Part shown: one piece after another, positions 18,472 to 48,915 of the stretch | How positions within the stretch are numbered: the first letter of the stretch is position 1 | Layout of the letters: each line of letters starts with the position of its first letter | Source: Ylistrum balloti | Lineage: Eukaryota | NCBI RefSeq assembly: GCF_031769215.1 | Contig: NW_026782468.1 | Location: 62,001-126,000 of the forward strand | DNA: 64,000 nucleotides | Direction of reading: 5' to 3' | The notes under the pieces: model-generated | Databases searched by the model: none | What the model was told of the DNA's origin: nothing | What the model saw: the letters and a program-made list of their open reading frames with translations, nothing else | Program-made: the position numbers and the translations under genes

Positions 18472-19229
18472 TTTCACGTTCCCGATGCCTCTATTGCTAT
18501 CTCCGCTAACTCAAAAGTACTGTCTTATCTCCGTACCATTTTGACCTCATCCAAGGAAAACTGAGGTCAAAACTAACTTCCGAAAAAACCCAGTAGTTAC
18601 ACATCATGAGAATGACAACATGTCCTTCCAAACTATTGAGTAACAATTGTTCAGTCAACGCCTTACTAATACACCCCCCCACCATCAAACGATTCCTTAT
18701 CTACGCTTTTGTCGCCTACTGATATGATATGGCGTTTACATATCAACTGAGAATGCCTACTACTTTTATTTTCATTTCCGAAATATTGTATAGATCATAA
18801 TGCAACCAGAATTGGACAACAGGCAAAGCCTATGAAAGATTGTACAAAAGACATACAAGTGAATAGCACCTTTTCATGATTTCGGGTGAGGTACAGTAAC
18901 GCCAAACAATGAATAAAACTGCATCATACAGTTGTTTCGGCCTCCGAGGATTCGTCAGTGTTGTCAAACTTTTGAGGCCCAGGAGGCGACTAAAGCCAGC
19001 TCTTCAACAAATTGAACACAATACACATCAATTTAATTACAAATCTGCATAACAGTTACAAAATAGTGTGTAATGATGAAATATGAAAAAAAGAGATATG
19101 ACTACTTGATTTTTTTATCATTATGCTACATATTTTTTATAATTCATAAAATCTACCACAGATATCAGTCCGTTACTTGGTCGGCAGGTCACCACAGAGA
19201 AATTGTCCATTAAATTTCGGAACAATTTC

Positions 19230-20530: not shown

Positions 20531-20547
20531 AAGCGATTAATATTATC

Positions 20548-21660: not shown

Positions 21661-21744
21661 CGTTGATGAGTTATCAGTTATCAAATTGTATTATTGCTAT
21701 GTAGGACGCATTAGGGTATTTTAATGATAGTGTGCATTCGACAG

Positions 21745-22165
21745 GCCATGTGATTGTGTATATCTGACAGGACACGTGATCGTGTACATCTGACGGGACA
21801 TGTGATCGTGTACATCTGACGGGACATGTGATTTTGTACATCTGACGGAGCATGTGATTGTTAACATCTGACAGGTGTGACATACATGACGGGATCTGAA
21901 TGTGATCGTGTACATCTGACGGGACATGTGATTTTGTACATCTGACGGAGCATGTGATTGTTAACATCTGACAGGACATGTGATCGTGTACATCTGACGG
22001 GAAATGTGATCGTGTACATCTGACGGGAAATGTGATCTTGTACATCTGACGGGGCATGTGATTGTTAACATCTGACAGGACATGTGTTCGTGTAAATCTG
22101 ACGGGGCATGTGATTGTGTACATCTGACGGGACATGTGACCGTTACATCTGACAGGACATGTAAT
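21745..22165. repeat. 26-bp minisatellite, unit-1 allele (about 16 copies)
   Basis: Unit cgtgtacatctgacgggacatgtgat. Confidence 0.9.
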
Positions 22166-22535
22166 CTTTTACATCCAATTTACTAAATCCTTTCAGCGTA
22201 TAGCTACATTCCGATATCGCTTTGTTGTCAGTAAATTTAATCCGTTTTAAGTTTTAATAATAATACCGTAAACACTTCATCATAATTTTGTACATAGATA
22301 GGATTAACATTACACCTGTGTACGATGGCATCTACAGAAAATTTTATTTCTCCTTAGGGTCTAGATGTACTATTTTATATTTATCTCAGTCGAAACTCAC
22401 AGTGACTCCTTAAACCCGTCCATGGATCAACATTCAGAATAATGTCCATGTAATTTACAAAGAATAAATATAAATCAAACTATGATTTTTTAAAACCTTT
22501 TATTTGATATAATTTTAAATATATATATATGTTCT

Positions 22536-24514
22536 TTAAAATCGTGTTATATCCGTAATGATTCGAGAAACAATATGTGTGATTATTAAGTTCCATTGCC
22601 ACTCCGGGAAATTTATTGATTCACTTTCGACCAAATTCAATCCATTGAAACCTGAAAGAAAATATAGAAATAGGACAGAAAAAAACCCCAAAACAATTAC
22701 TTGTATACGTACCCTCATTGCCTTCAGTACCAAAGACATTGCCACGATCTTCATTATCTCTGTAGTTAGTGAACTGTATTATAGAACTGAAGAAAAAAAT
22801 CTTAACTGCCTAACTTGTAACTGATCAAAATATGTAGCTTAAATTCTTCAGCTCAAAGAAGAGCTTCAATGACTTCTGAACGGATCGCTAAGAACATTTG
22901 TTGAATTACCAACACTGTCACTTTGATTGACGACAAATCAGTTCACACGATAATATCACTGACTACAAATCAGTTCTACTTACTAGCAGTTCTTACAGTT
23001 ACAGACAACCATTCTCAAGATAGTTTTATGGAATAATTAGCTGATCTCGAGATATTATCACTGAATAAGTAACAGTTCTCACAATAGCTGTTCTGAGAGT
23101 TGTTCTCGTGTTATATTAAATGAACATACCTGTTCTCCTTTATCTCACAAATATAAAAAATTCTGATCATGCATGGTCGATCTCTCCATCGGAAAGTCGA
23201 ATGAGAATAAGTGAGATATCCTTCTAAACAGTCCTCGCCAGAGGAGTGGTGATTGTTTGGCTCGCCCGGGTTCCAGTTAGTGTAATCCAGGTACTGACCA
23301 CTTTCATACCATCTCCAGTCTCCTTCCACAAATATGTCATTCCCGCCGAGCCAAAAGTCACGATGGTCAGCTGAGTACAAAAGCAATCATTGATGAAATA
23401 AGAATGAATATAGTGACGATTCTTTTTCGTCCTTTTGATTGCAATCCAAAAGATTTTGTACAATGATTTTTCGTATTTTCAAACATGTATTAAGGTAAAC
23501 AAGAAAATAATACCGTCACTGTGAAAGACACAGGAGTGAATGAAAAGCGCTCGAGACGTCAATACATCAGCATTATCAATCTCATTAACATAAATGAAAG
23601 CACAGCCTACTATGAAGTTGTATAAGCATTTGCCTCAAGAAATTGTCCTCTTGTGCATCTTCAACTTCAGCGAGGTGGGCGTGGAACGATGAACATGCGT
23701 CCTGTTTAAGATATCAAAGTTATTAAAGTGTTACATGGAGACAACTGACATAGTACCACGAGAACAAGATACGTTTTTCGGAAGTTTAAGTAACTTCTGA
23801 GGTCTTCATGAATGTCACCATATGAACATTGGTCAATCTAAGTATGTAATGTCAAGTTCCTAAATGAGAACAATGTTAACAAAAATGAAACCAAATGTCA
23901 GACTTACGAGCATTAAACATGTCCAACTGCAAAATGCACACACAAAACAAAATCTCAATGACATTATTATGAAGACTTTAAAACTTACTCATGAATGGCT
24001 CTTTTTTTTTATCTTAATAACATATATCAAATCAACGAATGACCAACTCATTCAGAACAACGACAGGAAAATATGCAAATCAATTACGAGAGCCAAATTA
24101 ATCAAATATCAATAAAATTTTAATGAAAAAAGTTATGAATATTTATTAATTAGTCTTTGAAATGTATTCCAGACAATGTACAATCAAAGTCGTCTAAGTT
24201 ACCGATGCTGCAGTCCAGTTTTTCCTGTCATCGGACACAAAATAGCAGGAACTATTATAGGTTTCCCAGCCGTTTGGACATCCACAGATCACTGGAAATC
24301 AATCAGCTATAAGCGTTTAACATGGAACAAGCCATGTAGCAGTACAGTCGACACATGACTCTATATATTGTTAAAATATAACAATTAATTGGACATTAAT
24401 ATTTAACTTCCAATAAGACAAAACTTTGTTGTAAGTCAGGAGTTAAATCATAAAGACTTTAAAATGTTGTATGTTGTTGAAAAGTATATTACCGTGAAAA
24501 AGTAAAACAAACAT
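22536..24514 (-). CDS. C-type lectin gene C1 (EPN/WRD); start and 3' exons provisional
   Basis: Exons 24493-24514 (MFVLLFH; short, true start may lie upstream), 24203-24291, 23611-23701, 23130-23370, 22713-22759 and putative 22536-22651; phases 1,0,1,2,1. CTLD: [14 protein letters not shown]...FWLGGND...EPN...WRDRPC...YICE. Confidence 0.75.
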
Positions 24515-25017
24515 CTTCAGTGAAAATAATAGTGCCTTTAAATAAGTCCTCACATTGAATTCTTCTAAAATTACTATCTGAAAGAAAATCGTGTGATAAA
24601 TCCCTGCTACAGTATGTTTATACATGTATTATGATCAGAGACACCAACGAAATGTATGTTATTATCTTCGAAAAACACTGTGAAATTTAAGTTTGAGATA
24701 GATGCGTATGATCACAAATCTTACCCTGACCCAACACAACTATGAAAATCGGACCGAATCTTGCAAGGTAAGTCATTGTTGTTGTACCGTCAAAAACCGA
24801 TCTATACTACATTGTAGACATGACCAACAGATAACGACTTATCTTATAACGTAACATATAATGGTTTCTACTGAGGACCACCTATACAGAAGAGGGGAAG
24901 TGGACTAAGAATATAGAAAAGTTAAAACTGGAATATTGTATTATTATCTTATGTTTATTTCCGACAAGTAACTGCATTATTATTGAGTAACGGCACCAGT
25001 TGCAGGCTCAGTCACGG

Positions 25018-26676
25018 TCAGCCAATCACGATTGCTCCAGAACTGTCACTGAAAGTAAAGTACTTCAAGTACTGGTGCATAAGTGATTTGGAGAGTCTCT
25101 TAACGAATGAGGATATAATTTCAAAAATAAGCAAGCTGTGAATGTATCAATTAAATTTAATACTTGTATCCTTATTAATGACACATGTGTATCCTTGGTA
25201 ATGTCACATTTGTATCATTTGAATTAAGAGATTGTTTAACGATGTCAATCAAGGCTTTAGATCACCCTTTTATATTTCTTTGGACAATTAACAAGCATCA
25301 CTAACAGGACAGAATATTATATCTATTTTACTGTTATGTTAGTCATTTGGTTATTTTTTTTTTTAAATTTCTTATTGTTTTTTCTTTTTTGTGTTCTAAA
25401 ATCCTCACAAAAATATCATGTAAAGACCGTTTATTGAAATTGTCCTGAATTTTCGATATTCCTGTAATATTACTATGGCTGGTTTGAAACATTCGGCAAA
25501 ATTAACACGTTCAAAACACTATCAACATTTAAAGAATCTCCAGTTTTTAAATATGCTTCTTCACCTTAATGCAGACTTACCCGATCTCACAAATGAAGTT
25601 ATTTTGTTCTTTGCATGGTCTATCATCCCATCGATACTCTCGATTTTGCCTTATTGCAACAATCAAACAATCTTCTTTTTGGCTATGGTAGCTGTTTGGT
25701 TCGCCGGGGTACCACTTTGTGTAGTTGAAACGCTGGTCAGAGTATACCCATCGCCAGTCACCTTCCACAAATATGTCCGCCCCGCCTAACCAATATTCAG
25801 CATCATTCGAGTGGCCATCTACAGAAATAAAACGACTCGCAAAAGAATAATGAATTGATTGTCAGTATATAACAAAGACATCATGAGCACAGGTAGAGTT
25901 TTGTATTGTTTTGAATTTGTATATAATTTGCTTTTTGTGAACAACTGACGGTAAGAAAAAAAAGTACTGATGAAGATAATGGAGTATTGACATAATTTCA
26001 CTATCACTATCACTGATGCTCGTTAGTATGCCTTGTGATTTAGTTGTCATCGTCTGGTGCTTATCTTTCACGTTTATCTAGGTCACCTGCTCGATCTTTT
26101 ATCTGTCTTTTTTCTGTAAGAATCCTGGTCTTATTCCACAGGTCCTTTCTAGGTAACTTTATTCTAATTTTCATACGGTTTTTTTTTCTTTTAAGAAACC
26201 TGGTTCTATTCTTCACGTATATTTTTTATTATGAGATCTGTTATCTATTCTTCTTGTTTTTAGAAAACCTGGTCTTTTTCACGTGTTTTTTCGTAATCTA
26301 TTCTCATTCTTCACGTTTTCTTTATTATAGGTGCCTGATCTTATGGTTGATGTTTAGAAATTATGTCTTCATGTGTTTTTTTATCACAGGTGGTATATAT
26401 TTCCTTTGTTCATATTTTGAGTGTTTTGGAGTTTTGAGGTATGTTTGCTCGTAATTCCTTTTTTTAGCATAAATTTATGTGCAACTTTCATTTCTCGATT
26501 TAAAATTCTCACTCGCTAAATGGGCTGAAAGGTCAGCATGATTTATTAAATGCCTATAAATAGTGATAAAAAAACGGCACCTTACCATGATATTTCGAGA
26601 TTATTTGTTTAAGAAAGGTGTCCTCCCTTGCGCTTTCAATTTCAGCAAGATGGGCATGATACAATCCACATGTTGA
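25018..26676 (-). pseudogene. 5'-truncated C-type lectin cassette D1 (exons 3-5 only, ORF and splice sites intact)
   Basis: Exons 26586-26676, 25581-25818 and 25018-25048 (STCGLYHAHL...EPN...WDD...CEIGDSSGAIVIG*); no exon 1 or 2 before the junction at 27076. Confidence 0.8.
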
Positions 26677-27779
26677 CTGAAATTGTTAACAAATTCTTAA
26701 AATCAGTCTGGAAGTAATATGAATCAATCTTCAAATAAAATGAAAATACCTCCATTTACCTACAACATCCCCACCCAAACCCTCGAAAACGATAATCATG
26801 TCAGAATCATGGTTAATTTTTACATTCTATTCAATTTACAAATTCTCAAATGAAAATAAAAACGACCAAGGAATCTTTGCTGTGCGCTCTTTCAACCATA
26901 AGCAAATTCAAATATCTGTTTCATTTCAACTAATTTCATTGTATAAAAAATTTGATGACTTGATAGACCTATACAAACTATCAATATTGGTGGTATGAAA
27001 TATACATTATATATTTTGCATATAATCATATAGTTATAATATATTTGTGAGAATATTACCATTTATTCATACACACTCATTCAAGTAAAAAACTGAAGTC
27101 AAAACTAACTTCCGAAAAAACCTAGTAGTTACACATCATGAGAATGACAACATGTCCTTCCAAACTATTGAGTAACAATTGTTTAATCATCGCCTTACTA
27201 CTACATATACCTCACAACTTCCAAAAATAACCCCCCTCCCCCATCAAACGATTCCTTATCTACGCTTTTTGTCGCCTACTGATATGATATGGCGTTTACA
27301 TATCAACTGACAATGCCTGTTACTTTTATTTTCATTTCCGAAGTATTGTATAGATCATAATGGAAACGGAATTGGACAACAGGCAAAGCCTATGAAAGAT
27401 TGTACAAAAGACATACAAGTGAATAGCACCTTTTCATAATTTCGGGTGAGGTACAGTAACGCCAAACAATGAATAAAACTGCATCATACAAGCCTCCGAG
27501 GATTCGTCAGTGTTGTAAAACTTTTGAGGCCCAGGAGGCGACTAAAGCCAGCTCTTCAACAAATTGAACACAATACACATCAATTTAATTACAAATCTGC
27601 ATAACAGTTACAAAATAGTGTGTAATGATGAAATATGAAAAAAAAGAGATATGACTACTTGATTTTTTTATCATTATGCTACATATTTTTTATAATTCAT
27701 AAAATCTACCACAGATATCAGTCCGTTACTTGGTCGGCAGGTCACCACAGAGAAATTGTCCATTAAATTTTGGAACAAT

Positions 27780-29060
27780 TTCTTCATGTAGGTAATGTCA
27801 ACAGAATAGTAACAAGACCAGTATAAGATTTGTGTGTGACGTTTCGATGACTATATAGTCACCTTTATCAGACAAATGACCAGTAAAGCGTACTAGTACT
27901 GACGAATTTATTGCACGAGCTGATAAGGACTCGACCTACTTTTTCGACTGTACTATAATCCTATATACGTTGTACACTAGAGTCGAAAATAGTATGACGA
28001 ACTGGTAAACTGGCCTATCATGATTTTACCAGCAGACATGTTGAAACAACAGTCATCATGGACACTGACGAATACGAGAACAAGTCACAGTTTTGCTCGA
28101 AGAAAACAAAACATATGTAAAACTCAAGAACAACCCTACCCAAAAGTTCACAAAGCTGCGGGTATCTATCAAAACTAAAGCAATGAAATAAGATAACCGA
28201 ATCACAATATAGACACCTCTATCACACTGCAGAGAACATAGTTAGAATGTACTGCACACCCAAGGTCCAAAAATACAGCCTATATTGCACTATACTGGTT
28301 CCATTGGTTACACTAGCAGACATTTTGAGACCCCTGGTGGGAAAATCAACAACACACCAACCAACAAGGCACTTGAGATCATTAGAGGCGACATAGAGTA
28401 AGACCGGTCATTGCAAAAGAACACCAATCTCCATATCCAAGACCTCACGGTTTCATTAGAATTTGAACATACAACAACATACTTTGCCTTCTGAGATATC
28501 CTCACCAGCAACGGCTTGGTAAGGCCACGTGTAGTCCAGTGTCTCCGATTGTGGCCAAACTGTTCATGGCGAAGAGGCTGTGGCCACCGTAGAATGCAAT
28601 CCAAGTCTGGAAGCGGTATATTAATAGCATATTGAAATATTAAAAAAACGGTCACAGAAAGTTCTGACTGAACATATCAATATCGTAGATACCACCAACA
28701 GCATCATATTCACTGTGATGAAGAAATCAATGGCACTAAACTATTTCCCGACACCCTCCTTGTAAAGAATAAAATGACAGTACCATCAAAGTATTTGTCT
28801 ATAGGAAAAAGACGCACACTTACCAATAACTCAACTTCCGATCGCAAAACTCCTTACACCAAGTTTGGCGTTGTTCAAACATTGCTCCATAGATGTGAAT
28901 TGATTATCAAAGAAAAACAAAACAAGAAACAATAACAAAATCACATGCATAGCGACATGAAAATATATGGATTCCCCTATAGAGGAGTCCAGAAAGGTAA
29001 CAACGAAGTTGATAAAAGCAAAAAGGCGAAGAGACGAAAGATCATCTACTAAAAGCGATT
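27780..29060 (+). mobile_element. Penelope-like relic, copy 2
   Basis: Duplicate of 19230-20530 with two extra small deletions near 28275-28310. Confidence 0.8.
27835..27877 (-). ncRNA. Hammerhead ribozyme motif, core variant CUGAUAA
   Basis: Same sequence as 19282-19324. Confidence 0.45.
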
Positions 29061-29466
29061 AATATTATTAAGGAATCTCTTAACTAAATCCACAATATAT
29101 AGTGTTTTCATCGTGATTAGGACAGTCATGTAGAAAGGGTTTGGAAGGTAGAAGAAATGGCATCACTAAGAGCAGAAAAGGAGTTAAAGAGAAGTTGTCT
29201 TTGATGAAGTGACCACAATCCTCTACACGAAATCCACATAAGCAGGCAGAGCTATATGTTGGATCGGGGACTTAAACCCATCTACGTTAAAGTAGTTTTC
29301 TTAGATGGCAAAATAGCCCATACAATATCTGCATATTCAGGAATAGGACGGATAAATGTTTAACATGTAGGTCATACAATATCTGCATATTCAACAATAG
29401 GACGTACACATGTTTTCTTTATAGCCTATACAATACAGTTTACTTCCGACTCTAGTTCGACGCCAA

Positions 29467-29782
29467 TAATTTTTTTTTAATTTTTATTTTTTTTGCACAT
29501 TTTTCAACATGAATGACATTACAAAAAACACACAATGGCATATACCCACACAATCACACAGATCAATACCATCCATCATCATCGTNNNNNNNNNNNNNNN
29601 NNNNNNNNNNNNNNNNNNNNNNNNNNNNNNNNNNNNNNNNNNNNNNNNNNNNNNNNNNNNNNNNNNNNNNNNNNNNNNNNNNNNNNNNNNNNNNNNNNNN
29701 NNNNNNNNNNNNNNNNNNNNNNNNNNNNNNNNNNNNNNNNNNNNCACTTCATCGTCATCTGCTTGATCAATCGTCATCATAG

Positions 29783-29830
<48 letters not shown>

Positions 29831-31678
29831 TATACACTGTCAATATTATATTTTGATTATGTACACATACACCCACACACANNNNNNNNNNNNNNNNNNN
29901 NNNNNNNNNNNNNNNNNNNNNNNNNNNNNNNNNNNNNNNNNNNNNNNNNNNNNNNNNNNNNNNNNNNNNNNNNNNNNNNNNNNNNNNNNNNNNNNNNNNN
30001 NNNNNNNNNNNNNNNNNNNNNNNNNNNNNNNNNNNNNNNNNNNNNNNNNNNNTGTTGAAGACAAGAAATGATGATATTTTTGTTGTACAATTGCAAAAAC
30101 TACTTATTTGAAACTACTTATATGTGCTTCTAAAATATTCGGCTAAGACAGGGGCATCAAGAGATCATGAGTAGTAAAAATTCAAAACTGAATTGTGGAT
30201 TTGAAAGACTACAGGTTAAGTAATTTCTCCCATTTTTTCCATTCGTTATCAATTTTTTGTTTTTCTTTGTCCTCTTTACTTTTTACAATATATTTCTGGA
30301 TTGAATAGTTTTCTTTAATTATATTTTTAAGAACATTTATATTTAGAGAGTTGTGAAAGCATCTCATTCTATGAATGTACTGTTTTATGATTATGACAAT
30401 TTCATTGTCAACACGATTACTGGGAAGAGAGTTCTGAAAGAGAAAGCCAAAAATAAACGATTTTTTGTTTACCGAGAAAGGGATTAATAAAGCTTCTAAT
30501 AATGTTTTAAAGCACTGAAGTAAGTTTTGAACTTCCTGGCACTCCCATAGAACATGGGTAATTGTCTCAGTTTCAGTATTACAGAAAACACAGAGAGGGG
30601 AGATAACTAGTCCTAGTTTGAAAAGTAAAGAATTGGTTACCAAGATGTAATGGGTTAATCTGTACTGAAACCATTGTAGTTTTGCACTGTTTGTCACCTG
30701 GAATGGGATTCTATGATACCTAGTCCATGATGAGTGGTCAATATCGTCTAACAGTGAGTTCCATTTTTTGGTGCCTTTTGGAATCAATTCTGATTATTTA
30801 AAAGATTATAAAATAATTTTGAACCTTTTTTATCTCTGAAGAAAATCTGTGAGTTAATTGGTATGTATGGGTAAGTTATATTAAGTACTTTATGTGTATC
30901 GTATGAGGAGATATATTTTTTATAGCTGAGACCAGACCATGATACTCTAGAAAATTAGTGTTTATTCTATATTTCTGAATAAATTCATCAAATGGGTAAA
31001 ATGTGCCAGTTTCTGAGTTTTTCATCAAATCATTTATGATTATTATGTTACTTTTATACCATTTTTTAAGGAATAGTGCTTTACCTCCAACAAGAATTTT
31101 ACTGTTATACCAAATTGGAACTTTAATTAAGTTTTCCTGAAAGGCTTTAATATTATATTTTATCTGCACTTTATACCAGGCATTTAGAACATCCTGCCAA
31201 AATTTATTTTTACACTTCTTTATACAAAGCTTTATATATTCAGTACCACTAACAGCAAGAAGATCTGTATCAATATATGACATTAGTATTGTTTGCCATT
31301 TCTCTGTTTTTTGGTAAAGTCTCCTAATCCAGGTGAGTTTTAATGCTTGTATGAAAGCAGTGAGGTTAACCATTTTTAATCCACCACTGGTGTAATTTTG
31401 AGTGATTACCTCCCTTTTTATCTTATCTGGCTTCCCATTCCAAAGATAATCATAGAGAACTAAGTTAAGTTTCTTGAGAAATTTATCTTCAGGGTTAGGT
31501 AAAGAGATAAAAAGATGATTAAACTGAGATATAAGAAGTGATTTAATAATACTAATTCTTCCAATAGGTGTAAATGATCTCCTATTCCATATTTTTATTA
31601 AGGATTTTAGTTTGAGCTTTTTATCAAAATTTAACTTTGGGATTTCATGCAGGTTTACACTAAATTCTATTCCTAACA
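29467..31678 (-). mobile_element. 5'-truncated L1/Tx1-clade LINE with A-rich tail and 13-bp TSD
   Basis: ORFs 30876-31697 (IIKSLLISQFNHLFISLPNP, YLWNGKPDKIKR, GGLKMVN) and 30209-30787 (CVFCNTETETITHVLWEC zinc knuckle). T-rich tract from 29470 is the minus-strand tail. TSD agttcgacgccaa at 29454-29466 and 31679-31691. Contains two N-gaps. Confidence 0.88.
29586..30052. other. Two assembly gaps (29586-29744, 29882-30052) flanking a (CAT)n microsatellite
   Basis: N runs; (cat)n at about 29780-29830. Confidence 0.95.
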
Positions 31679-32494
31679 AGTTCGACGCCAAAGTCATTTA
31701 TATAAAATGAAAAAAAGATATTGTCCTAAAGCTGATCCCTGTAGTACCCCTGCCGTTAGGGTTTTCCATGTAGATTTAGAGCCATTTATGATAACCCTTT
31801 TCTCCTATTTGTTAGGTTGGATCCGAATTATTTTAACATATTATCACATATACCATGCTTTTTTCCATTTAGAAATCAAACCATTGTACCAAACATTATC
31901 AAATACCTCGAGATGTTTGACGATTTCATCATGGATACTTAATAGCTAAAAAAGAAGACAGAAGAATTTTAGGTTGATGCTGAAAAATCATATTTTCTCA
32001 CGAAAGAGATTTTATGAAAATAAGGAGTAATTGATATGGGTTAGTTGGGTCTCAAATTTCATGTGTAGATCCCTCTTGGTCCTTAGTTGTGTCATTTTGT
32101 CTGTGCGACTGATTTGATAAAGCTAAAAATGGCCGATATGTGACAATCTTGTATTTGGCAGTTAAAGATTATTATCGCCATTTCTGGACAGAAAATTTTT
32201 AATTTCATATAATTCATAGCAAAACATGAGGGGAAAAAAGAGGGAAAAGATCAACTTTAAAAGAGCAAGAGATCAGGCAATGATGGGCGTCAAGATCCCT
32301 CTGGAATCTCTCATCGAATTCTGTCGATTGACCAATCATCTCATCACATGATGCTGAAAATCTTTGAGAAAAATTTATATTGATGTTTGATTAGAAAGAT
32401 TATTTCCCCGTTGATGAGTTATCAGTTATTAAATTGTATTATTGCTATGTAGGACGCATTAGGGTATTTTAATGATAGTGTGCATTCGACAGGC

Positions 32495-32680
32495 CATGTG
32501 ATTGTGTATATCTGACAGGACACGTGATCGTGTACATCTGACGGGAAATGTGATCGTGTACATCTGACGGGGCATGTGATTGTTAACATCTGACTGGACA
32601 TGTGATCGTGTAAATCTGACGGGGCATGTGATTGTGTACATCTGACGGGACATGTAACCGTTACATCTGACAGGACATGT
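32495..32680. repeat. 26-bp minisatellite, unit-2 allele (about 7 copies)
   Basis: Same unit as 21745-22165. Confidence 0.9.
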
Positions 32681-33055
32681 AATCTTTTACATCCAATTTA
32701 CTAAATCCTTTCAGCGTATAGCTACATTCCGATATCGCTTTGTTGTCAGTAAATTTAATCCGTTTTAAGTTTTAATAATAATACCGTAAACACTTCATCA
32801 TAATTTTGTACATAGATAGGATTAACATTACACCTGTGTACGATGGCGTCTACAGAAAATTTTATGTCTCCTTAGGGTCTAGATGTACTATTTTATATGT
32901 ATCTCAGTCGAAACTCACAGTGACTCCTTAAACCCGTCCATGGATCAACATTTAGAATAATGTCCATGTAATTTACAAACAAAGAATAAATATAAATAAA
33001 ACTATGATTTTTTAAAACCTTTTATTTGATATAATTTTAAAAATATATATGTTCT

Positions 33056-35032
33056 TTAAAATCGTGTTATATCCGTAATGATACGAGAAACAATATGTGT
33101 GATTATTAAGTTCCATTGCCACTCCGGGAAATTTATTGATTCACTTTCGACCCAATTCAATCCATTGAAACCTGAAAGAAAATATAGAAATAGGACAGAA
33201 AAAAAAACCCAAAACAATTACTTGTATACGTGCCCTCATTGCCTTCAGTACCAAAGACATTGCCACGATCTTCATTATCTCTGTAGTTAGTGAACTGTAT
33301 TATAGAACTGAAGAAAAAATCTTAACTGCCTAACTTGTAACTGATCAAAATATGTAGCTTAAATTCTTCAGCTCAAAGAAGAGCTTCAATGACTTCTGAA
33401 CGGATCGCTAAGAACATTTGTTGAATTACCAACACTGTCACTTTGATTGACGACAAATCAGTTCACACGATAATATCACTGACTACAAATCAGTTCTACT
33501 TACTAGCAGTTCTTACAGTTACAGACAACCATTCTCAAGATAGTTTTATGGAATAATTAGCTGATCTCGAGATATTATCACTGAATAAGTAACAGTTCTC
33601 ACAATAGCTGTTCTGAGAGTTGTTCTCGTGTTATATTAAATGAACATACCTGTTCTCCTTTATCTCACAAATATAAAAAATTCTGATCATGCATGGTCGA
33701 TCTCTCCATCGGAAAGTCGAATGAGAATAAGTGAGATATCCTTCTAAACAGTCCTCGCCAGAGGAGTGGTGATTGTTTGGCTCGCCCGGGTTCCAGTTAG
33801 TGTAACCCAGGTACTGACCACTTTCATACCATCTCCAGTCTCCTTCCACAAATATGTCATTCCCGCCGAGCCAAAAGTCACGATGGTCAGCTGAGTACAA
33901 AAGCAATCATTGATGAAATAAGAATGAATATAGTGACGATTCTTTTTCGTCCTTTTGATTGCAATCCAAAAGATTTTGTACAATGATTTTTCGTATTTTC
34001 AAACATGTATTAAGGTAAACAAGAAAATAATACCGTCACTGTGAAAGACACAGGAGTGAATGAAAAGCGCTCGAGACGTCAATACATCAGCATTATCAAT
34101 CTCATTAACATAAATGAAAGCACAGCCTACTATGAAGTTGTATAAGCATTTGCCTCAAGAAATTGTCCTCTTGTGCATCTTCAACTTCAGCGAGGTGGGC
34201 GTGGAACGATGAACATGCGTCCTGTTAAAGATATCAAAGTTATTAAAGTGTTACATGGAGACAACTGACATAGTACCACGAGAACAAGATACGTTTTTCG
34301 GAAGTTTAAGTAACTTCTGAGGTCTTCATGAATGTCACCATATGAACATTGGTCAATCTAAGTATGTAATGTCAAGTTCCTAAATGAGAACAATGTTAAC
34401 AAAAATGAAACCAAATGTCAGACTTACGAGCATTAAACATGTCCAACTGCAAAATGCACACACAAAACAAAATCTCAATGACATTATTATGAAGACTTTA
34501 AAACTTACTCATGAATGGCTCTTTTTTTATCTTAATAACATATATCAAATCAACGAATGACCAACTCATTCAGAACAAGGACAGGAAAATATGCAAATCA
34601 ATTACGAGAGCCAAATTAATCAAATATCAATAAAATTTTAATGAAAAAAGTTATGAATATTTATTAATTAGTCTTTGAAATGTATTCCAGGCGATGTACA
34701 ATCAAAGTCGTCTAAGTTACCGATGCTGCAGTCCAGTTTTTCCTGTCATCGGACACAAAATAGCAGGAACTATTATAGGTTTCCCAGCCGTTTGGACATC
34801 CACAGATCACTGGAAATCAATCAGCTATAAGCGTTTAACATGGAACAAGCCATGTAGCAGTACAGTCGACACATGACTCTATATATTGTTAAAATATAAC
34901 AATTAATTGGACATTAATATTTAACTTCCAATAAGACAAAACTTTGTTGTAAGTCATGAGTTAAATCATAAAGACTTTAAAATGTTGTATGTTGTTGAAA
35001 AGTATATTACCGTGAAAAAGTAAAACAAACAT
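33056..35032 (-). CDS. C-type lectin gene C2 (near-identical to C1)
   Basis: Exons 35011-35032, 34721-34809, 34131-34221, 33650-33890, 33234-33280 and putative 33056-33171. One D>G change vs C1 in exon 4; the putative intron-5 donor is GC. Confidence 0.72.
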
Positions 35033-35535
35033 CTTCAGTGAAAATAATAGTGCCTTTAAATAAGTCCTCACATTGAATTCTTCTAAAATTACTATCTGAA
35101 AGAAAATCGTGTGATAAATCCCTGCTACAGTATGTTTATACATGTATTATGATCAGAGACACCAACGAAATGTATGTTATTATCTTCGAAAAACACTGTG
35201 AAATTTAAGTTTGAGATAGATGCGTATGATCACAAATCTTACCCTGACCCAACACAACTATGAAAATCGGACCGAATCTTGCAAGGTAAGTCATTGTTGT
35301 TGTACCGTCAAAAACCGATCTATACTACATTGTAGACATGACCAACAGATAACGACTTATCTTATAACGTAACATATAATGGTTTCTACTGAGGACCACC
35401 TATACAGAAGAGGGGAAGTGGACTAAGAATATAGAAAAGTTAAAACTGGAATATTGTATTATTATCTTATGTTTATTTCCGACAAGTAACTGCATTATTA
35501 TTGAGTAACGGCACCAGTTGCAGGCTCAGTCACGG

Positions 35536-37211
35536 TCAGCCAATCTCGATTGCTCCAGAACTGTCACTGAAAGTAAAGTACTTCAAGTACTGGTGCATAA
35601 GTGATTTGGAGAGTCTCTTAACGAATGAGGATATAATTTCAAAAATAAGCAAGCTGTGAATGTATCAATTAAATTTAATACTTGTATCCTTGTTAATGAC
35701 ACATGTGTATCCTTGGTAATGTCACATTTGTATCATTTGAATTAAGAGATTGTTTAACGATGTCAATTAAGGCTTTAGATCACCCTTTTATATTTCTTTG
35801 GACAATTAACAAGCATCACTAACAGGACAGAATATTATATCTATTTTACTGTTATGTTAGTCATTTGTTTATTTTTTTTTAATTTCTTATTGTTTTTTCT
35901 TTTGATGGAATCTTTCTTTGGTATTCTAAAATGCTCAAAAAATATCGTGTAAAGACCGTTTATTGAAATTGTCCTGAATTTTCGATATTCTTGTAATATT
36001 ACTATGGCTGGTTTGAAACATTCGGCAAAATTAACACATAAATCGTTCAAAACACTATCAACATTTAAAGAATCTCCAGTTTTTAAATATGCTTCTTCAC
36101 CTTAATGCAGACTTACCCGATCTCACAAATGAAGTTATTTTGTTCTTTGCATGGTCTATCATCCCATCGATACTCTCGATTTTGCCTTATTGCAACAATC
36201 AAACAATCTTCTTGTTGGCTATGGTAGCTGTTTGGTTCGCCGGGGTACCACTTTGTGCAGCTGAAAAGCTGGTCAGAGTATACCCATCGCCAGTCACCTT
36301 CCACAAATATGTCCGCCCCGCCTAACCAATATTCAGCATCATTCGAGTGGCCATCTACAGAAATAAAACGACTCGCAAAAGAATAATGAATTGATTGTCA
36401 GTCTATAACAAAGACATCATGAGCACAGGTAGAGTTTTGTATTGTTTTGAATTTGTATATAATTTGCTTTTTGTGAACAACTGACGGTAAGAAAAAAAAA
36501 GTACTGATGAAGATAATGGAGTATTGACATAATTTCACTATCACTATCACTGATGCTCGTTAGTATGCCTTGTGATTTAGTTGTCATCGTCTGGTGCTTA
36601 TCTTTCACGTTTATCTAGGTCACCTGCTCTATCTTTTATCTGTCTTTTTTCTGTAAGAATCCTGGTCTTATTCCACAGGTCCTTTCTAGGTAACTTTATC
36701 CTAATTTTCATGCGGTTTTTTTTCTTTTAAGAAACCTGGTTCTATTCTTCACGTATATTTTTTATTATGAGATCTGTTATCTATTCTTCTTGTTTTTAGA
36801 AAATCTGGTCTTTTTCACGTGTTTTTTCGTAATCTATTGTCATTCTTCACGTTTTCTTTATTATAGGTACCTGATCTTATGGTTCCTGTTTAGAAATTAT
36901 GTCTTCATGTGTTTTTTATCACAGGTGGTATATATTTCCTTTGTTCATATTTTGAGTGTTTTGGAGTTTTGAGGTATGTTTGCTCGTAATTCCTTTTTTT
37001 AGCATAAATTTATGTGCAACTTTCATTTCTCGATTTAAAATTCTCACTCGCTAAATGGGCTGAAAGGTCAGCATGATTTATTAAATGCCTATAAATAGTG
37101 ATAAAAAAACGGCACCTTACCATGATATTTCGAGATTATTTGTTTAAGAAAGGTGTCCTCCCTTGCGCTTTCAATTTCAGCAAGATGGGCATGATACAAT
37201 CCACATGTTGA
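35536..37211 (-). pseudogene. 5'-truncated C-type lectin cassette D2 (exons 3-5 only, ORF and splice sites intact)
   Basis: Exons 37121-37211, 36117-36354 and 35536-35566 (ends AIEIG*); junction at 37615. Confidence 0.8.
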
Positions 37212-38279
37212 CTGAAATTGTTAACAAATTCTTAAAATCAGTCTGGAAGTAATATGAATCAATCTTCATATAAAATGAAAATACCTCCATTTACCTACAA
37301 CATCCCCACCCACCCAAACCCTCGAAAACGATAATCATGTCAGAATCATGGTTAATTTTTACATTCTATTCAATTTACAAATTCTCAAATGAAAATAAAA
37401 ACGACCAAGGAATCTTTGCTGTGCGCTCTTTCAACCATAAGCAAATTCAAATATCTGTTTCATTTCAACTAATTTCATTGTATAAAAATTTTGATGACTT
37501 GATAGACCTATACAAACTATCAATATTGGTGGTATGAAATATACATTATATATTTTGCATATAATCATATAGTTATAATATATTTGTGAGAATATTACCA
37601 TTTATTCATACACACTCATTCAAGTAAAAAACTGAGGTCAAAACTAACTTCCGAAAAAACCTAGTAGTTACACATCATGAGAATGACAACATGTCCTTCC
37701 AAACTATTGAGTAACAATTGTTTAATCAACGCCTTACTACTACATATACCTCACAACTTCCAAAAATAACCCCCCTCCCCCATCAAACGATTCCTTATCT
37801 ACGCTTTTTGTCGCCTACTGATATGATATGGCGTTTACATATCAACTGACAATGCCTGTTACTTTTATTTTCATTTCCGAAATATTGTATAGATCATAAT
37901 GCAACCAGAATTGGACAACAGGCAAAGCCTATGAAAGATTGTACAAAAGACATACAAGTGAATAGCACCTTTTCATAATTTCGGGTGAGGTACAGTAACG
38001 CCAAACAATGAATAAAACTGCATCATACAAGCCTCCGAGGATTCGCCAGCTCTTCAACAAATTGAACACAATACACATCAATTTAATTACAAATCTGCAT
38101 AACAGTTACAAAATAGTGTGTAATGATGAAATATGAAAAAAAAGAGATATGACTACTTGATTTTTTTATCATTATGCTACACATTTTTTATAATTCATAA
38201 AATCTACCACAGATATCAGTCCGTTACTTGGTCGGCAGGTCATCACAGAGAAAATGTCCATTCAATTTCGGAACATTTT

Positions 38280-39700
38280 CTTCAGGTTGGTAATGTCAAC
38301 AGAATAGTAACAAAACCAGTATAAGATTTGTTCGTGACGTTTCGATGACTATATGGTCACCTTTATCAGACAAATGACCAGTAAAGCGTACTAGTACTGA
38401 CGTATTTAGTGCACGAGCTGATAAGGACTCGACCTACTTTTTCGACTGTGCTATAATCCTGCGTACATCGCACACTAGAGTCGAAAATAGTATGACGAAA
38501 TGGTAAGCAGGCCTATCATGATTTTACCAGCAGACATGGGGAAACAACAGTCATCATGGACACTGACGAATACGAGAACAAGTCGCAGTTTTGCTCGAAG
38601 AAAACAAAACATATGTAAAATTCAAGAACAACACTTACCAAAGTTCAAAAAGCGGCGGGTATCTATCAAAACTAAAGCAATGAAATAACATAACCAAATG
38701 ACAATATAGACACCTGTGTCTCACTGCAGAGAACACACCTAGAATGTTCTGCACACCCTAGATCCACAAGGAAGGGAACTCATTACAGCCTATATTGGAC
38801 TATACTGGTTCCATTGGTTACAATGTCTCCAGGTCACTTGCGGTCATTCTAGGACCTCTAGTGGGAAAATCAGAACATCCAGTCAAAACCTCGAAATACA
38901 TTGCAGAAAGTATGTTTACGGTACTTGACCAAAACGATCAGGAATTCGTGACATTCATCAACGATGTAGTATCTGTTTTCAACAACACACCCACCGTCAA
39001 GGCCCTTGATATCATTAGGGGCCGCCTAGAGTAAGACCAGTCATTGCGAAAGAGCACCAATCTCCATATCCAAGACCTCACGGTTTTGTTAGAATTTGAG
39101 CATACAACAGTATATTTTGTCTTCTGAGACACCCTCTATCAGCAACAGTTTGGTACGGCTACGGGTAGCCCAATGTGTCCAATTGTGGCCAAACTGTTCA
39201 TGGGAAAGAGGCTATAGCCGCCGTAGAATACAAGCCAAGTCTGTGGAAGCGGTATATTGCTGGCATATTGAAATATTCAAAAAAGGGTCACAGAAAGTTC
39301 TGACTGAACTTATGAATATCGTAGATACCACAAACAGCATCATATTCACCTGTGAAGAAGAAATCAATTACACATAGCTATTTCCCGATACCCTCCTTGT
39401 AAAGAATGATGACGGTACTATCAAAGTATTGGTCTGTAGGAAAATGACGCACACTTACCAATACCTCAACTTCCGATCGCACCACGCCTTATACCAAGTT
39501 GGGCGTTGCGCAAACCTTGCTCCATAGATGTGAATCGATTACCACAGAAGAACAAGATCAGAATCAAGAACAAAATCACATACATAGCGACATGAAAATT
39601 GATAGTTGCCCCTATAGAGGAGTCCAGAAAGGTAACAACGAAGTTGATAAAAGCAAAAAGGCTAAGAGACGAAATACCATCTACTTAAAGCGATTTATAT
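38280..39700 (+). mobile_element. Penelope-like relic, copy 3 (least deleted)
   Basis: ORF 38795-39034 DYTGSIGYNVSRSLAVILGPLVGKSEHPVKTSK...DVVSVFNNTPTVKALDIIRGRLE, a typical Penelope RT segment. Confidence 0.85.
38331..38375 (-). ncRNA. Hammerhead ribozyme motif, core variant CUGAUAA, 5-bp stem I
   Basis: Minus strand: tttgt-CTGATAA-a-ggtgac/catata/gtcatc-GAA-ACGT-C-acgaa. Confidence 0.45.
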
Positions 39701-39706
39701 CATTAA

Positions 39707-40446
39707 AGCCCCAATATACGTAAAAATCACCATAAAAAACAAACTTTATCTTATTTTCCCCGTAATATATGTAACAAAACAAATACTTTCCTATAATTAT
39801 AGAAAATAAAACTGACTGTTTTCAATTTAAATAAAAATTGAAAAAATCGGAAAATAAACAATGTGGGACCCACAATAATTCATACATTACCGCTCGTAGC
39901 GATGACATTGCGCATGAGTATATTCCGCGTGTGTAAACATGGCAGACACAGTATAGACGTTCACCAGCCGCTTCCTTTTTTTCCAATCATACATCAGGCC
40001 AGTTCTAAATTCTTACGTTATAATTGTGCGTCGTATCGTTTCTTAACTAATTATTCCTTCTAATAATTTCCCAAAACTTAATGTTTATCACAGGAATACC
40101 TGAAGTTTACGACAAGACTTCGCAAACAATGTTTGTAAACAAAACCTTACCGTAGACATATCTGCATGTGCTTCCTCTATAAGTAGAAACTTCAACTCTC
40201 GCGAGATCAGGTCATGAACTTTCCGACGTGGTTCGGCAACAATCGTAATTTCGTTGGCGGCGTGTTTAAAATGGAGGTGTGTTTACAAATAGCGAGTTTC
40301 AACTGCTCATATATCAATACTTTATGCATAAAGTAATGGTAACTATTGTTTGAATGACTTAATTTTAACTACATCTTAGATAATATCTCAATAATTATGT
40401 GTGATTCTACACTAAATTTTTGGTGAATGTTACGTATATTGGGGCT
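39707..40446. mobile_element. 740-bp non-autonomous DNA transposon (Kolobok-type MITE)
   Basis: TTAA TSD at 39703-39706 and 40447-40450; TIR AGCCCCAATATACGTAA (17 bp perfect, 24/26 extended); AG..CT termini; single TTAA empty site in unit 2 (about 29068-29071). Confidence 0.85.
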
Positions 40447-40450
40447 TTAA

Positions 40451-41130
40451 GGAATCTCTTAACTAAATCCACAATATATCTCTTAGTGTTTTCATCGTGA
40501 TTAGGACAGTCATGTAGAAAGGGTTTGGAAGGTAGAAGAAATGGCATCACTAAGAGCAGAAGGGAAAAAAAGAGAAGTTGTCTTTAATGAAGTGACCACA
40601 ATCCTCTACACGAAAACCACATAGGCAGACAGAGCTGTGTTGGATCGGGGAGTTAAACCAATCTGCGTTAAAATTTCTTGCATAGTTTTCTTAGATGGCA
40701 AAATAGCCCATACAATATCTGCATATTCAGGAATAGGACGGATAAATGTTTTATATGTAGGCCATACAATATCTGCATTTTCAGGAATAGGACGGATAAA
40801 TGTTTTATTCAAGAATAGAATGTATACATGTTTTGTATATAGCCCATACAATACAAGCTTACTTCAGTCTCTAATTCGTCGCCAATATCATTTACATATA
40901 ATAAAAAAGATATTGTCCTAAAGCTGATCCCTGTAGTACCACTGCCGTTAGGGTTTTCCATGTAGATTTAGAGCCATCTATGATAACCCTTTTCTGCTAT
41001 TTGTTAGGTTAGATCCGAACTATTTTAACATATCATCACATATACCATGCTTTTTTCATTTGTAAATCAAACCATTGTTCCAAACATTATCAAATACCTC
41101 GAGATGTTTGACGATTTCAACATAAATACT
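40451..41130 (-). mobile_element. CR1/L2-like LINE relic, copy 3
   Basis: ORF 40606-40851 YKTFIRPIPEYADIVWA; matches 20548-21200. Confidence 0.75.
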
Positions 41131-41253
41131 TAATAGGTGATAAACAGTAGGATCTTTGGGTAGAATCCCAGATTGATGCTGAGAAAAAAACCTTTTGTCT
41201 AGACAGATGTTCTATGAAAATTTGGAGCAATTGATATGGGTTAGTCTGAAGGG

Positions 41254-41390
41254 CATGTGATCGTGTACATCTGACGGGACATGTGATTGTGTACATCTGA
41301 CGGGATATGTGATGTGTACATCTGACGGAACATGCGATCGTGTACATCTGACGGGGCATGTTATCGTGTACATCTGACGGGGCATGTGAT
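41254..41390. repeat. 26-bp minisatellite, unit-3 allele (about 5 copies)
   Basis: Same unit as 21745-22165. Confidence 0.85.
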
Positions 41391-42048
41391 AGTGTTTCTA
41401 CCATTCTACTTTAATTTATTCCACTCTCAGGCAATTGTGTAAATATGGCGGGTGTTGGATAAATATAAGTGATATTCCACTAGTGGTATATGGACTTCCG
41501 GTTACATGATTGGTGAACTTTGACCCCTTTGTTCCACGTGCGATTTGTTTAATACCGTCTGCTGTCAACATGGCTGAACTGGATACGCTTGAGGTGAATG
41601 TAGGTGATAAAATAAGGCTATGTGATGGGGAAAGGGTGTAATACGGGCAATTTCAAAAGCAGATAATAATGTTGGGTTTGATCGTTTCCAAATAGAGCTT
41701 AATTCGGGAAAGACTGTTACAGAGGCCAGGTATCGTTTCGACGTGACACCGGCTTGTCAGTGGTAGCCTGTATGTTTACAAATGCTTATACTCCGCCCCT
41801 TTCACGTCAGCTTACGTTATTGATACATTGTAGTACAATGTATTTGTAATGTTGCACTTGCTTACACCTAGACCTAACATTGTAGCCTTTTCATAATTTT
41901 AGTCGATTGAAGTCAAAATTAATCTTTTGAGCATAATTCCAGCCCAAAGTAATAAATTTCTTTAATTATTTCGGATGTCGGAATGGTGCATATATTGGCC
42001 TTGATTAAATTGCTTGTTATTTATTCAGTTCATATTCAGAGTTTAGAT

Positions 42049-44076
42049 TTATGCCTGTTTTTTATATAACCGGGTCTGATGAATAAGTCTGGGAGTAACA
42101 ATAACGGAAAAAGACAATATGTGTGTGATTATTAAGTTCCATTGCCACTCCGGGAAATTTATTGATTCACTTTCGACCCAATTCAATCCATTGAAACCTG
42201 AAAGAAAATATAGAAATAGGACAGAAAAAAAACCCAAAACAATTACTTGTATAAGTACCCTCATTGCCTTCAGTACCAAAGACATTGCCACGATCTTCAT
42301 TATCTCTGTAGTTAGTGAAACTGTATTATAGAACTGAAGAAAAAATCTTTACTGCCTAACTTGTAACCGATTAAAATATGTAGCTTAAATTCTTCAGCTC
42401 AAACAATAGCTTCAATGAATTCTGAACGGATCGCTAAGAACATTTGTTGAATTACCAACACTGTCACTTTGATTGACGACAAATCAGTTTACACGATAAT
42501 ATCACTGACTACAAATCAGTTCTACTTACTAGCAGTTCTTACAGTTACAGACAACCATTCTCAAGATAGTTTTATGGAATAATTAGCTGATCTCGAGATA
42601 TCATCACTGAATAAGTAACAGTTCTCACAATAGCTGTTCTGAGAGTTGTTCTCGTGTTATATTAAATGAACATACCTGTTCTCCTTTACCTCACAAATAT
42701 ACAAATATGTGTGCGTGCATTCTCGATCTCTCCATCGGAAAGTCAAATGAGAATGAGAATTACTGAGATGTCCTTCTAAACAGTCCACGTCAGAGGAGTG
42801 GTGATTGTCTGGCTCGCCCGAGTCCCAGTTAGTGTAACCCAGGTAATGACCACTTCCATACCACCTCCAGTCTCCTTCGACAAATATGTCATTCCCGCCG
42901 AGCCAAAAGTCACGATGGTCAGCTGAGTACAAAAGCAATCATTGATGAAATAAGAATGGATATAGTGACGATTCTTTTTCGTCCTTTTGATTGCAATCCA
43001 AAAGGTTTTGTACAACGATTGTTCATGTTTTCAAACATGTATTAAGGTAAATAAGAAAATAATACCGTCATCTGTGAAAGACACAGGAGTGAATGAAAAG
43101 CGCTCGAGACGTCGACAATACATCAGCGTTATCAATCTCAGTAACATAAATGAAAGCACAACCTACTATGAAATTTTGTAAGCATTTGCTTCAAGAAATT
43201 GTTCTCTTGTGCATCTTCAACTTCAGCGAGGTTGGCATGGAACGATGAACATGCGGCCTGTTAAAGATATCAAAGTTATTAAAGTTTTACATGGAGACAA
43301 CTGACATAGTACCACGAGAACAAGATACGTTTTTCGGAAGTTTAAGCAAATTCTGACGTCATCAAGAATTTCACCATGTGAACATTGGTCAAATTAAGTA
43401 TGTAATGTCAAGTTCCTAAATGAGAACAATGTTAACAAAAATGAAACCAAATGTCAGACTTACGATCACTGAACACGTCCAACCGCAAAATGCACACTCA
43501 AAAAAATCTCAATGACATCATTATGAAGAGTTTAAAACTTCCTCATGAATGGCTCTTTTTTATCTTAATAACATATATCAAATCAACGAATGACAAACTC
43601 AATCAGAACAACGACAGGAAAAGATGCAAATCAATTACGATGTTCCATAGCCAAATAAATCAAATATCAATAAAAACTTTAAATAAAAAAAAGTTATGAA
43701 TATTTATTAATTAGTCTTTGAAATGTATTCCAGACAATGTACAATCAAAGTCGTCTAAGTTACCGATGCAGCAGTCCAGTCTTTCCCCTCATCGGACACA
43801 AAATAGCAGGAACTATTATAGGTTTCCCAGCCGTTTGGACATCCACAGATCACTGGAAATCAATCAGCTATAAGCGTTAAACAAGGAACAAGCCATGTAG
43901 ACGTAAGTCGACACATGACTCTATATATTGTTAAAATATAACTATTAATTGGACATTTATATATAACTTCGAATAACACAAAACTTTGCATTAATTCATG
44001 AATTATATCATAACAAAGATTTTAAAACGTTAATGTTGTTGAAAAGTATATTACCGTGAAATAGTAAAACAAACAC
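42049..44076 (-). CDS. C-type lectin gene C3 (EPD/WRD); coding exons intact but putative start ATG>GTG, functional status uncertain
   Basis: Exons 44055-44076, 43764-43852, 43167-43257, 42676-42922, 42259-42305 and putative 42049-42197; no stops or frameshifts in the CTLD. Confidence 0.68.
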
Positions 44077-44452
44077 CTTCAGTGAAAATAGTGAAAACTT
44101 TAAATAAGTCCTCACATTGAATTCTTAAAGGACTATCTGAAGCAAAATCGTGTGATAAATCACTGCTACAGTATGTTTATACATGTATTATGATCAGAGG
44201 CACCAACGAAATGTATGTTATTATCTTCGAAAAACACTGCGAAATTTAATAACAAGTTTGATATTGATGCATATGAACACAAATCTTACCCTGACCCAAC
44301 ACAGCTGTGAAAATCAGACCGAATCTTGCAAGGTAAGTCATTGTAGATGTACCGTCACAAACCGACCTAGACTACATTATGGACGTGACCAACAGATAAC
44401 GACTGATCTTATAGCTGAATTCTTCACTTTTTAAAAAAGATAATACTGACAC

Positions 44453-44613
44453 TGTAATATCTTGTTTGTTACCCACGAGGAACAATCAACTCATAAGAAA
44501 TGGCGTCCAAGTGATACAACTGCTTTTATTAACCTCCACGACAGAAGAGCAAACGCTCAGGGTTATACTAAATACCCTACAGTAACACGTACCGGATTGA
44601 TCCATATATCACA
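44453..44613 (-). repeat. 3' LTR
   Basis: tg...ca ends; 9 mismatches in 161 bp vs the 5' LTR (manual count). Confidence 0.95.
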
Positions 44614-44625
44614 CTCCTCCCTCTT
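44614..44625 (-). promoter_or_regulatory. Polypurine tract
   Basis: Minus strand aagagggaggag abutting the 3' LTR. Confidence 0.85.
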
Positions 44626-44785
44626 TAAAATGTCAAGTTCAATACTCAAATTACACAAAATCTCTGTTGATTATTGTTAACCAGTCTTTGGTCTTCTGAA
44701 CTGAAAGAAACGATAATTCAACATTCACTGCAAATACTGTAATTAAAAGAGATCTCAATCACACTTATCACTGTCAATGATATGG

Positions 44786-48871: not shown

Positions 48872-48903
48872 AACACAGAGTCGATCTTACCACAAGTTCC
48901 GTG

Positions 48904-48914: not shown

Positions 48915-48915
48915 C

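Follow-up and report, generated by a model that had tools for sequence, protein, structure and literature searches.

Bivalves rely on secreted lectins, whose families are very large and change fast, in recognising non-self, in sorting particles and in biomineralisation. Their C-type lectin repertoires are expanded and diversified (PMC10140915), and bivalve recognition families expand by tandem duplication (PMC6835236). We analyzed a 64,000-nt stretch of the Ylistrum balloti genome (NCBI RefSeq assembly GCF_031769215.1, 648 Mb at 34% GC; contig NW_026782468.1, positions 62,001 to 126,000 of the forward strand), hereafter the window, with positions numbered from its first letter. The minus strand of the window carries a C-type lectin gene cluster that includes three tandem copies of one gene, here called C1, C2 and C3. 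Like the described expansions, these are lineage-specific tandem duplicates of apparently secreted, lectin-like recognition proteins with high sequence diversity; whereas the earlier work (PMC10140915; PMC6835236) concerns expansion at the level of families, this locus offers one young paralogue pair at the nucleotide level, with the neighbouring lectin gene D as internal control and with evidence of exchange between copies. The amino acid sequences encoded by the C genes have clearly evolved faster than their silent sites and faster than gene D, while the lectin scaffold is conserved. Rapid diversification of tandem lectin genes in bivalves is well known, and C1 to C3 are a moderate case of this familiar pattern, one more set of tandem duplicates whose adaptive divergence is plausible but unproven. 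A trio of young paralogues with a control gene in the same units also provides a natural experiment for separating selection, relaxed constraint and gene conversion.

Judged by their sequences, C1 to C3 are small lectins with a single C-type lectin domain (CTLD), presumably secreted, and closest to the perlucin-like proteins of scallops, six of which served as outgroups (from Pecten maximus, Argopecten irradians and Mizuhopecten yessoensis; P0151-P0155 and P0117). The scallop proteins are similar in size (159-164 aa), consist of a signal peptide and one CTLD, and share with the C proteins a CT..FICE motif and a homologous short C-terminal tail. They are only 43-55% identical over exon 4, which makes them family members rather than orthologues, and they differ from C1 and C2 in being polar where the latter carry a hydrophobic MIRIF stretch, and from C3 in lacking its Val in place of the Ca2+-site Glu and its longer beta3-beta4 loop. 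The Met-Ile-Arg-Ile-Phe stretch of C1/C2 lies between the third Cys and the FICE strand and is derived and unusual for the family, the relatives examined all being polar there. Searches of the protein collections with queries other than the full-length C protein yielded no close orthologue. One with the 93-aa open frame of exon 4, under a length filter ending at 162 aa (the full proteins have 163-165 aa), returned nothing; in an exhaustive search of representative proteins giant multi-CTLD proteins predominated, and the best single-domain relative was only 60% identical (P0117). The exon-4 peptides match Pfam PF00059 (Lectin_C) at 35.1 bits for C1 and 31.3 bits for C3 (cut-off 22.6; profile positions 40-106 of 107) as well as many solved CTLDs (PDB 5ao5, 5xts and 1kmb; E=6e-17 to 1e-6). 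All Cys residues, the FWLGG motif and the EGDWRW hairpin are invariant across C1 to C3 and the outgroups.

The canonical Ca2+-dependent carbohydrate-recognition domains (CRDs), such as those of mannose-binding protein A (MBP-A) and the mannose receptor CTLDs, belong to the same fold family by sequence. We mapped the ligand positions of the C proteins onto what we take to be the equivalent residues of MBP-A, E185, N187 and E193. At the five canonical site-2 positions C1 and C2 have E, N, E, R and D, and thus retain the EPN motif and the Glu before Asp-Cys as canonical CRDs do, whereas C3 has E, D, V, R and D. C3 is therefore changed at two of the five positions, the Asn of EPN having become Asp and the Glu before Asp-Cys Val, so that EPN..GEDC in C1/C2 corresponds to EPD..DVDC in C3 (42785..42811, minus strand). 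Unlike canonical CRDs, all three copies have WRD for WND, and none has the full ligand set of a mannose-type CRD (EPN, Glu before Asp-Cys, WND). To judge from these residues, canonical site-2 binding of Ca2+ and sugar is doubtful for C1/C2 and unlikely for C3, which has probably departed from canonical Ca2+-dependent sugar binding, either by change of function or by decay. The label 'sugar-binding exon', under which exon 4 had been described, is thus an assumption, given the WRD in all copies and the ligand changes in C3. A predicted structure of the scallop protein P0152, built from an 11-row alignment, had a mean predicted local distance difference test (pLDDT) score of 66 and scores below 50 across the whole long-loop region; we used it for the positions of helices and strands only and not for distances to the ligand site.

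Self-comparison of the window resolved three tandem repeat units, U1 (18546-27075), U2 (27076-37614) and U3 (37615-52000), each with one complete four-exon C gene and with exons 3-4, the 3' half, of lectin gene D. C1 (23111..24776, minus strand; exons 24776-24725, 24291-24203, 23701-23611 and 23370-23111, including the stop codon) encodes 163 aa. The nearly identical C2 (33631..35294, minus strand; exons 35294-35243, 34809-34721, 34221-34131 and 33890-33631) has a single coding difference from it, D106G, and the diverged C3 (42657..44341, minus strand; exons 44341-44290, 43852-43764, 43257-43167 and 42922-42657) encodes 165 aa. All three genes are intact, with open frames and GT-AG introns. 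The coding sequence (CDS) of C1 extends 18-19 nt past the exon 4 end given in a preliminary description of this DNA (23130), to a TAA at 23111, and exon 4 is taken as the last exon because the C-terminal tail is homologous to that of the scallop perlucin-like proteins. The D exons lie on the minus strand at 25580..26670 in U1 (D1'), at 36116-37205 in U2 (D2') and at 50158-51625 in U3 (D3); the upstream exon 2 of D (56375-56467) is present for the intact D3 alone, and the units of D1' and D2' are without exons 1-2.

The preliminary description, made from the sequence alone, had reported a strong signature of diversifying selection in the comparison of C1/C2 with C3. Its codon counts were reproduced exactly: between C1 and C3 there are 29 replacement and 4 synonymous codons over exons 2-4, of which exon 4 accounts for 19 and 2, respectively (24 nucleotide changes in exon 4 by codon alignment; 23/241, or 9.5%, by MAFFT). 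Over the whole CDS there are 32 replacement and 4 synonymous codons (35:4 nucleotide changes) plus a two-codon insertion. This insertion, an in-frame ATTCTC-ATTCTC tandem in the beta3-beta4 loop of C3 (6 nt inserted; 42749..42760, minus strand), is present as described and absent from all outgroups. Its placement is ambiguous, and an equally parsimonious alternative gives 18 replacement to 3 synonymous codons in exon 4. Also present are the reported changes EPN to EPD and, after WRD, RPCMIRIF to RECTHTYL, the latter a cluster of 9 differences in 21 nt (42702..42722, minus strand; counterparts at 23156-23176 in C1 and 33676-33696 in C2). The outgroups have Thr after the Cys in this cluster, placing part of it as derived in C1/C2 and not in C3. 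A ATATTTGT-ATATTTGT tandem within the C3 cluster was considered as a templated multinucleotide mutation and dropped, because the cluster is partly derived in C1/C2 according to the outgroups.

The claim that the changes gather around the ligand site held only in part: the EPN change and the cluster after WRD are there, but 13 of the 32 replacements fall in exons 1-3. Three lie in the signal peptide, 10 in exons 2-3 and 19 in exon 4, whose first 22 codons form an invariant core without replacements; five of the ten in exons 2-3 are within residues 66-76, which form helix alpha2 in the low-confidence model of the relative. The rate of replacement substitution (dN) in exon 4 showed no significant excess over that in exons 2-3 (p=0.19), and with two of five ligand positions changed against 32 of 163 codons replaced, a hypergeometric calculation by hand arithmetic (p~0.26) gave no evidence of targeting. 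Polarisation with the six scallop proteins assigned about 8 replacements to the C1/C2 lineage (P9, N42, D66, R70, Q75, Y129, P143 and M145) and about 10 to the C3 lineage (including G100, H103, S112, D116, D122, V123, V154 and the insertion); both lineages thus carry derived replacements.

By the Nei-Gojobori method, the whole CDS has a dN of 0.095, a synonymous rate (dS) of 0.042 and a ratio omega of 2.3, with omega at 2.0 for exons 2-4 and 2.7 for exon 4. Pairwise maximum likelihood under the GY94 (Goldman-Yang) model, with transition bias modelled, gave a whole-CDS omega of 3.1 and, with the alignment of the preliminary description, a likelihood-ratio test (LRT) against omega=1 of p=0.016-0.02; for exons 2-4 or exon 4 alone p was about 0.05 (0.04-0.23 for exon 4 over variants). 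Point estimates of omega ranged from 2.0 to 3.8 over all methods, subsets and alignments and were never below 2. The D exons, of the same age as the C genes because they lie in the same duplicated units, served as an internal control and had a dN of 0.012-0.020 (0.020 for D1-D3), a dS of 0.068 and an omega of 0.19-0.28. The contrast between C and D was significant both for the ratio of replacement to silent changes (p=0.03 and 0.012) and for dN (p=0.0002). When 39 random substitutions were simulated on C1, 11% of runs left an intact reading frame, and an open frame with all 14 Cys and Trp of the mature protein intact occurred in 0.7% (P=0.007). The scaffold is therefore constrained, so that gene-wide omega understates the rate at free sites, and neutral decay of the C genes is unlikely.

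The exon had also been said to outpace its own intron. The figure given for intron 3 was correct (10/240, or 4.2%, by MAFFT, plus 2 small indels), but the contrast is selective, resting on the least diverged intron. Between C1 and C3, divergence is 8.9% in intron 1, 6.0% in intron 2, 4.2% in intron 3 and 2.1% in the 3' flank, and unit-wide non-coding divergence over 6392 alignable positions is 7.3%, with 250-nt windows spanning 1% to 13%. Whole-CDS dN exceeds the divergence of the genes' own introns and 3' flank (p=0.005). Non-coding divergence is strongly overdispersed (chi2=109, 25 df, p=2e-12), and the 3' flank differs from intron 1 with p=3e-6; the drop from intron 1 to the 3' flank fits the pattern expected of partial homogenisation by gene conversion. 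Homogenisation of introns was one of two alternatives that the preliminary description had itself raised, and gene conversion fits both how little intron 3 and the 3' flank have diverged and the mosaics described below. The locus shows that a local contrast between exon and intron can mislead where copies exchange sequence.

We looked for C3-type sequence elsewhere in the assembly and in other sequencing runs. A whole-genome DNA search with exon 4 of C3 returned the three C copies only, a 42-nt pattern taken from the C3 cluster, with 3 mismatches or fewer allowed, had no second site in the whole genome, and the next-best paralogues of the C genes in the genome were 47% identical in protein. 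No donor was thus found in the assembly by DNA, pattern or protein searches for the other alternative raised at the outset, import of the exon from an unseen paralogue, and import from an assembled paralogue is excluded. Five runs (two studies, two organism labels) hold 41-59% of the sampled 31-mers of C3, only 21% of which are common to the reference's own C1/C2; C3-type sequence therefore exists outside the reference. No RNA run containing the stretch was found. Contigs of four runs were placed on 41300-45300; these are short and unphased and do not establish phase or copy number. Among the differences from C3 listed in the gene region in these four samples, 21 of 25 are the exact C1/C2 state. 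In the 3' flank the only contig listed for each run is of C1/C2 type, and one (from X5) continues into U1/U2-type downstream sequence. In three samples (X1, X2 and X4) the C1/C2-type contigs of the 3' flank stop at 42701, the edge of the cluster, and the depth beyond implies C3-like contigs. A single contig of X4 combines the C1/C2 state at 42856 (Glu100) with C3 states at the silent sites 42864 and 42879, within 23 nt.

In the explanation that we favour, segmental duplication of units of 8.5-14 kb would have produced the three complete C genes, of which C1 and C2 are nearly identical and C3 would be the older, diverged copy. After the split of C3 from C1/C2, replacements would have accumulated about two to three times faster than silent changes in both lineages, while the lectin scaffold (all Cys and Trp, the FWLGG and EGDWRW motifs, WRD) was left untouched. 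The cause would be diversifying (positive) selection acting on residues at the surface and in the loops of a recognition protein, among them those of the long-loop region and of the beta3-beta5 hairpins that surround the former Ca2+/sugar site. Superimposed on this, gene conversion or recombination among copies and alleles would keep intron 3 and the 3' flank similar and shuffle blocks of differences between haplotypes. That diversifying selection is the main cause, in preference to relaxed constraint, is a conclusion drawn from patterns of substitution, which we hold with about even confidence.

Several observations weigh against it. One-sided Fisher tests on the Nei-Gojobori counts are not significant (p=0.08-0.14). 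Removing the seven-codon cluster weakens the LRT to p=0.067, and removing the codons that flank the indel as well takes it to 0.14. If the indel is put in its other position, p becomes 0.075 over the whole CDS and 0.23 in exon 4; with clusters collapsed to single events the binomial p is 0.05-0.11. Multinucleotide events are known to produce false omega values above 1 (bioRxiv 10.1101/165969), and the omega signal is not robust to such events or to the choice of alignment. Only two effective sequences are compared, significance is nominal, and the gene pair was chosen post hoc for its striking look. At least 23 differences occur in 26% of 241-nt non-coding windows, so exon 4 is no outlier in raw divergence; whole-CDS dN (8.9% in this comparison) is not elevated over the unit-wide non-coding value (p=0.13), and the excess for exon-4 dN (p=0.03) is nominal, before correction for overdispersion. 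C3 has lost the Glu of its Ca2+ site, and a retrotransposon is inserted 72 bp ahead of its start codon. C1/C2 and C3 states occur in mosaics, so not all differences between paralogues are fixed at each locus; at least some segregate or are exchanged between copies. The earlier wording of a strong signature was therefore overstated, given borderline tests, sensitivity to two clusters and one alignment choice, heterogeneous non-coding divergence that is probably shaped by conversion, and copies that are not independent lineages; what survives of it is an omega above 1 in every variant, a scaffold that was kept and a D omega of 0.2-0.3, set against p-values that run from 0.016 to 0.14 by method, indel placement and treatment of clusters, and to 0.23 in exon 4 with the indel in its other position. 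The corollary that C3 was functional while diverging stands for the protein scaffold, but its Ca2+/sugar site is degraded (E to V) and a long terminal repeat (LTR) element sits 72 bp upstream.

The same observations can be read as relaxed constraint after duplication combined with chance, in which sites off the scaffold drift near-neutrally and a few complex or multinucleotide events inflate the count of replacements. The cluster of 9 changes within 21 nt, and the insertion by slippage together with the changes flanking it, would then be a few complex events, consistent with the loss of significance once clusters are dropped or the indel moved, and clusters of at least 9 differences in 22 nt are also found in non-coding DNA. 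Silent sites number only about 97, so that a count of 4 silent changes in place of about 7 would lie within ordinary sampling noise; the dS of the C genes lies below that of D and below the non-coding value, though not significantly, while their dN is near the non-coding level. The lost Ca2+ ligand of C3 and the displacement of its upstream region by a retrotransposon point the same way. Yet omega stays at 2.1-3.8 in all variants and never comes near or under 1, and with the scaffold constrained, a neutral rate elsewhere would yield a gene-wide omega below 1. Derived replacements, moreover, occur in both lineages, including the duplicated and apparently maintained C1/C2. On this balance we consider relaxed constraint a serious but rather unlikely explanation.

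Exchange between copies could in principle account for more than the similarity of introns. If the three genes were mosaics of old allelic or paralogous haplotype blocks, exchanged by conversion or unequal crossing-over with variable copy number, polymorphism would be mixed with divergence, C1 and C2 may be two haplotypes placed in tandem by the assembler, and the contrast between exon and intron would reflect where conversion tracts fell. The overdispersion of non-coding divergence, the difference between 3' flank and intron 1, the preponderance of C1/C2 states in the four other samples, the C1/C2 type of the contigs listed for the 3' flank, at least one continuing into U1/U2-type sequence, the contig breaks at 42701/42702 and the mixed states in X4 are all in keeping with such mosaics, as are assembly gaps near unit edges (17916-18046 before U1, and two early in U2). 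This account nevertheless seems improbable to us: U3 is structurally distinct (an LTR element, an intact D3 upstream and a different downstream segment), making C3 a separate locus in the assembly; U2 has a private transposon with a target-site duplication; conversion alone yields no excess of replacement over silent changes; and the read evidence consists of the short contigs qualified above. A further account, in which exon 4 of C3 or of C1/C2 was imported by gene conversion from an unseen, more distant paralogue, is very improbable. It draws on the concentration of differences within the 3' two-thirds of exon 4, with almost identical sequence on either side, and on the E143 and a Tyr in the cluster region that C3 has in common with lectin gene A. 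Against it stand the DNA and pattern searches, the 47% protein identity of the best other paralogues, the many silent differences that a distant paralogue would bring where only 2-3 are seen, and the estimated length of the N gaps (131-171 nt), too short for a hidden gene copy.

A more novel reading is conceivable, in which the beta4-beta5 loop exists as two sharply different cassettes, hydrophobic MIRIF and polar THTYL. Several individuals, and apparently also a second organism by label, would retain both under balancing selection, and short conversion tracts, with edges coinciding with the contig breaks at 42701/42702, would move them between tandem copies and alleles. We regard this as speculative and quite improbable. 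If true, cassette exchange would amount to conversion-based combinatorial diversity in an invertebrate innate recognition protein.

Two mobile elements distinguish the units. The LTR retrotransposon upstream of C3 (44414..49428, minus strand) is 5 kb long, encodes gag, reverse transcriptase-RNaseH and integrase, and has the same orientation as C3. It is inserted just upstream of a TATAAG motif and cuts C3 off from upstream sequence that is still present at C1 and C2. At least 8 related copies occur elsewhere in the genome at 84-95% identity; since the element is multi-copy, its read depth was rejected as a single-copy standard for estimating copy number. The other element is a 2.2-kb interspersed repeat found in U2 only (29469..31679), with a 13-bp target-site duplication (AGTTCGACGCCAA) and many copies elsewhere in the genome that are 96-98% identical, and we call it young. 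It holds both N gaps of U2 (29586-29744 and 29882-30052) and a (CAT)n run. The insertion is intergenic and at least 3.5 kb from every exon and intron compared, and the gaps therefore have no bearing on the comparison of C1 to C3.

Downstream of C3, in three other samples, contigs run from 41389 straight to 42122, without the 732 nt between (41390-42121). The sequence at 41300-41400 is a short tandem repeat that also occurs at 21750-22175 and 32495-32693, and because of these occurrences at the U1 and U2 positions the joint may represent the U1/U2 arrangement. D1' and D2' differ from the intact D3 by merely 3-5 replacements against 4 silent changes, and their exon phases equal those of the C genes, so that any splicing into them from an upstream C gene would keep the frame.

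Besides C1 to C3 the window holds five other lectin genes or fragments, among them lectin genes B (17867-16039, minus strand) and A (12721-11361, minus strand), and genome-wide there are at least 56 exon-4-like CTLD matches. Exon 1 of gene B was not found; an assembly gap (17916-18046) lies about 50 nt upstream of its exon 2, immediately before U1. Minisatellite arrays occupy 54002-56378, 56887-57741, 14931-15565, 21725-22175 and 62427-62896, the largest of which (2.4 kb, 54002-56378) adjoins exon 2 of D3.

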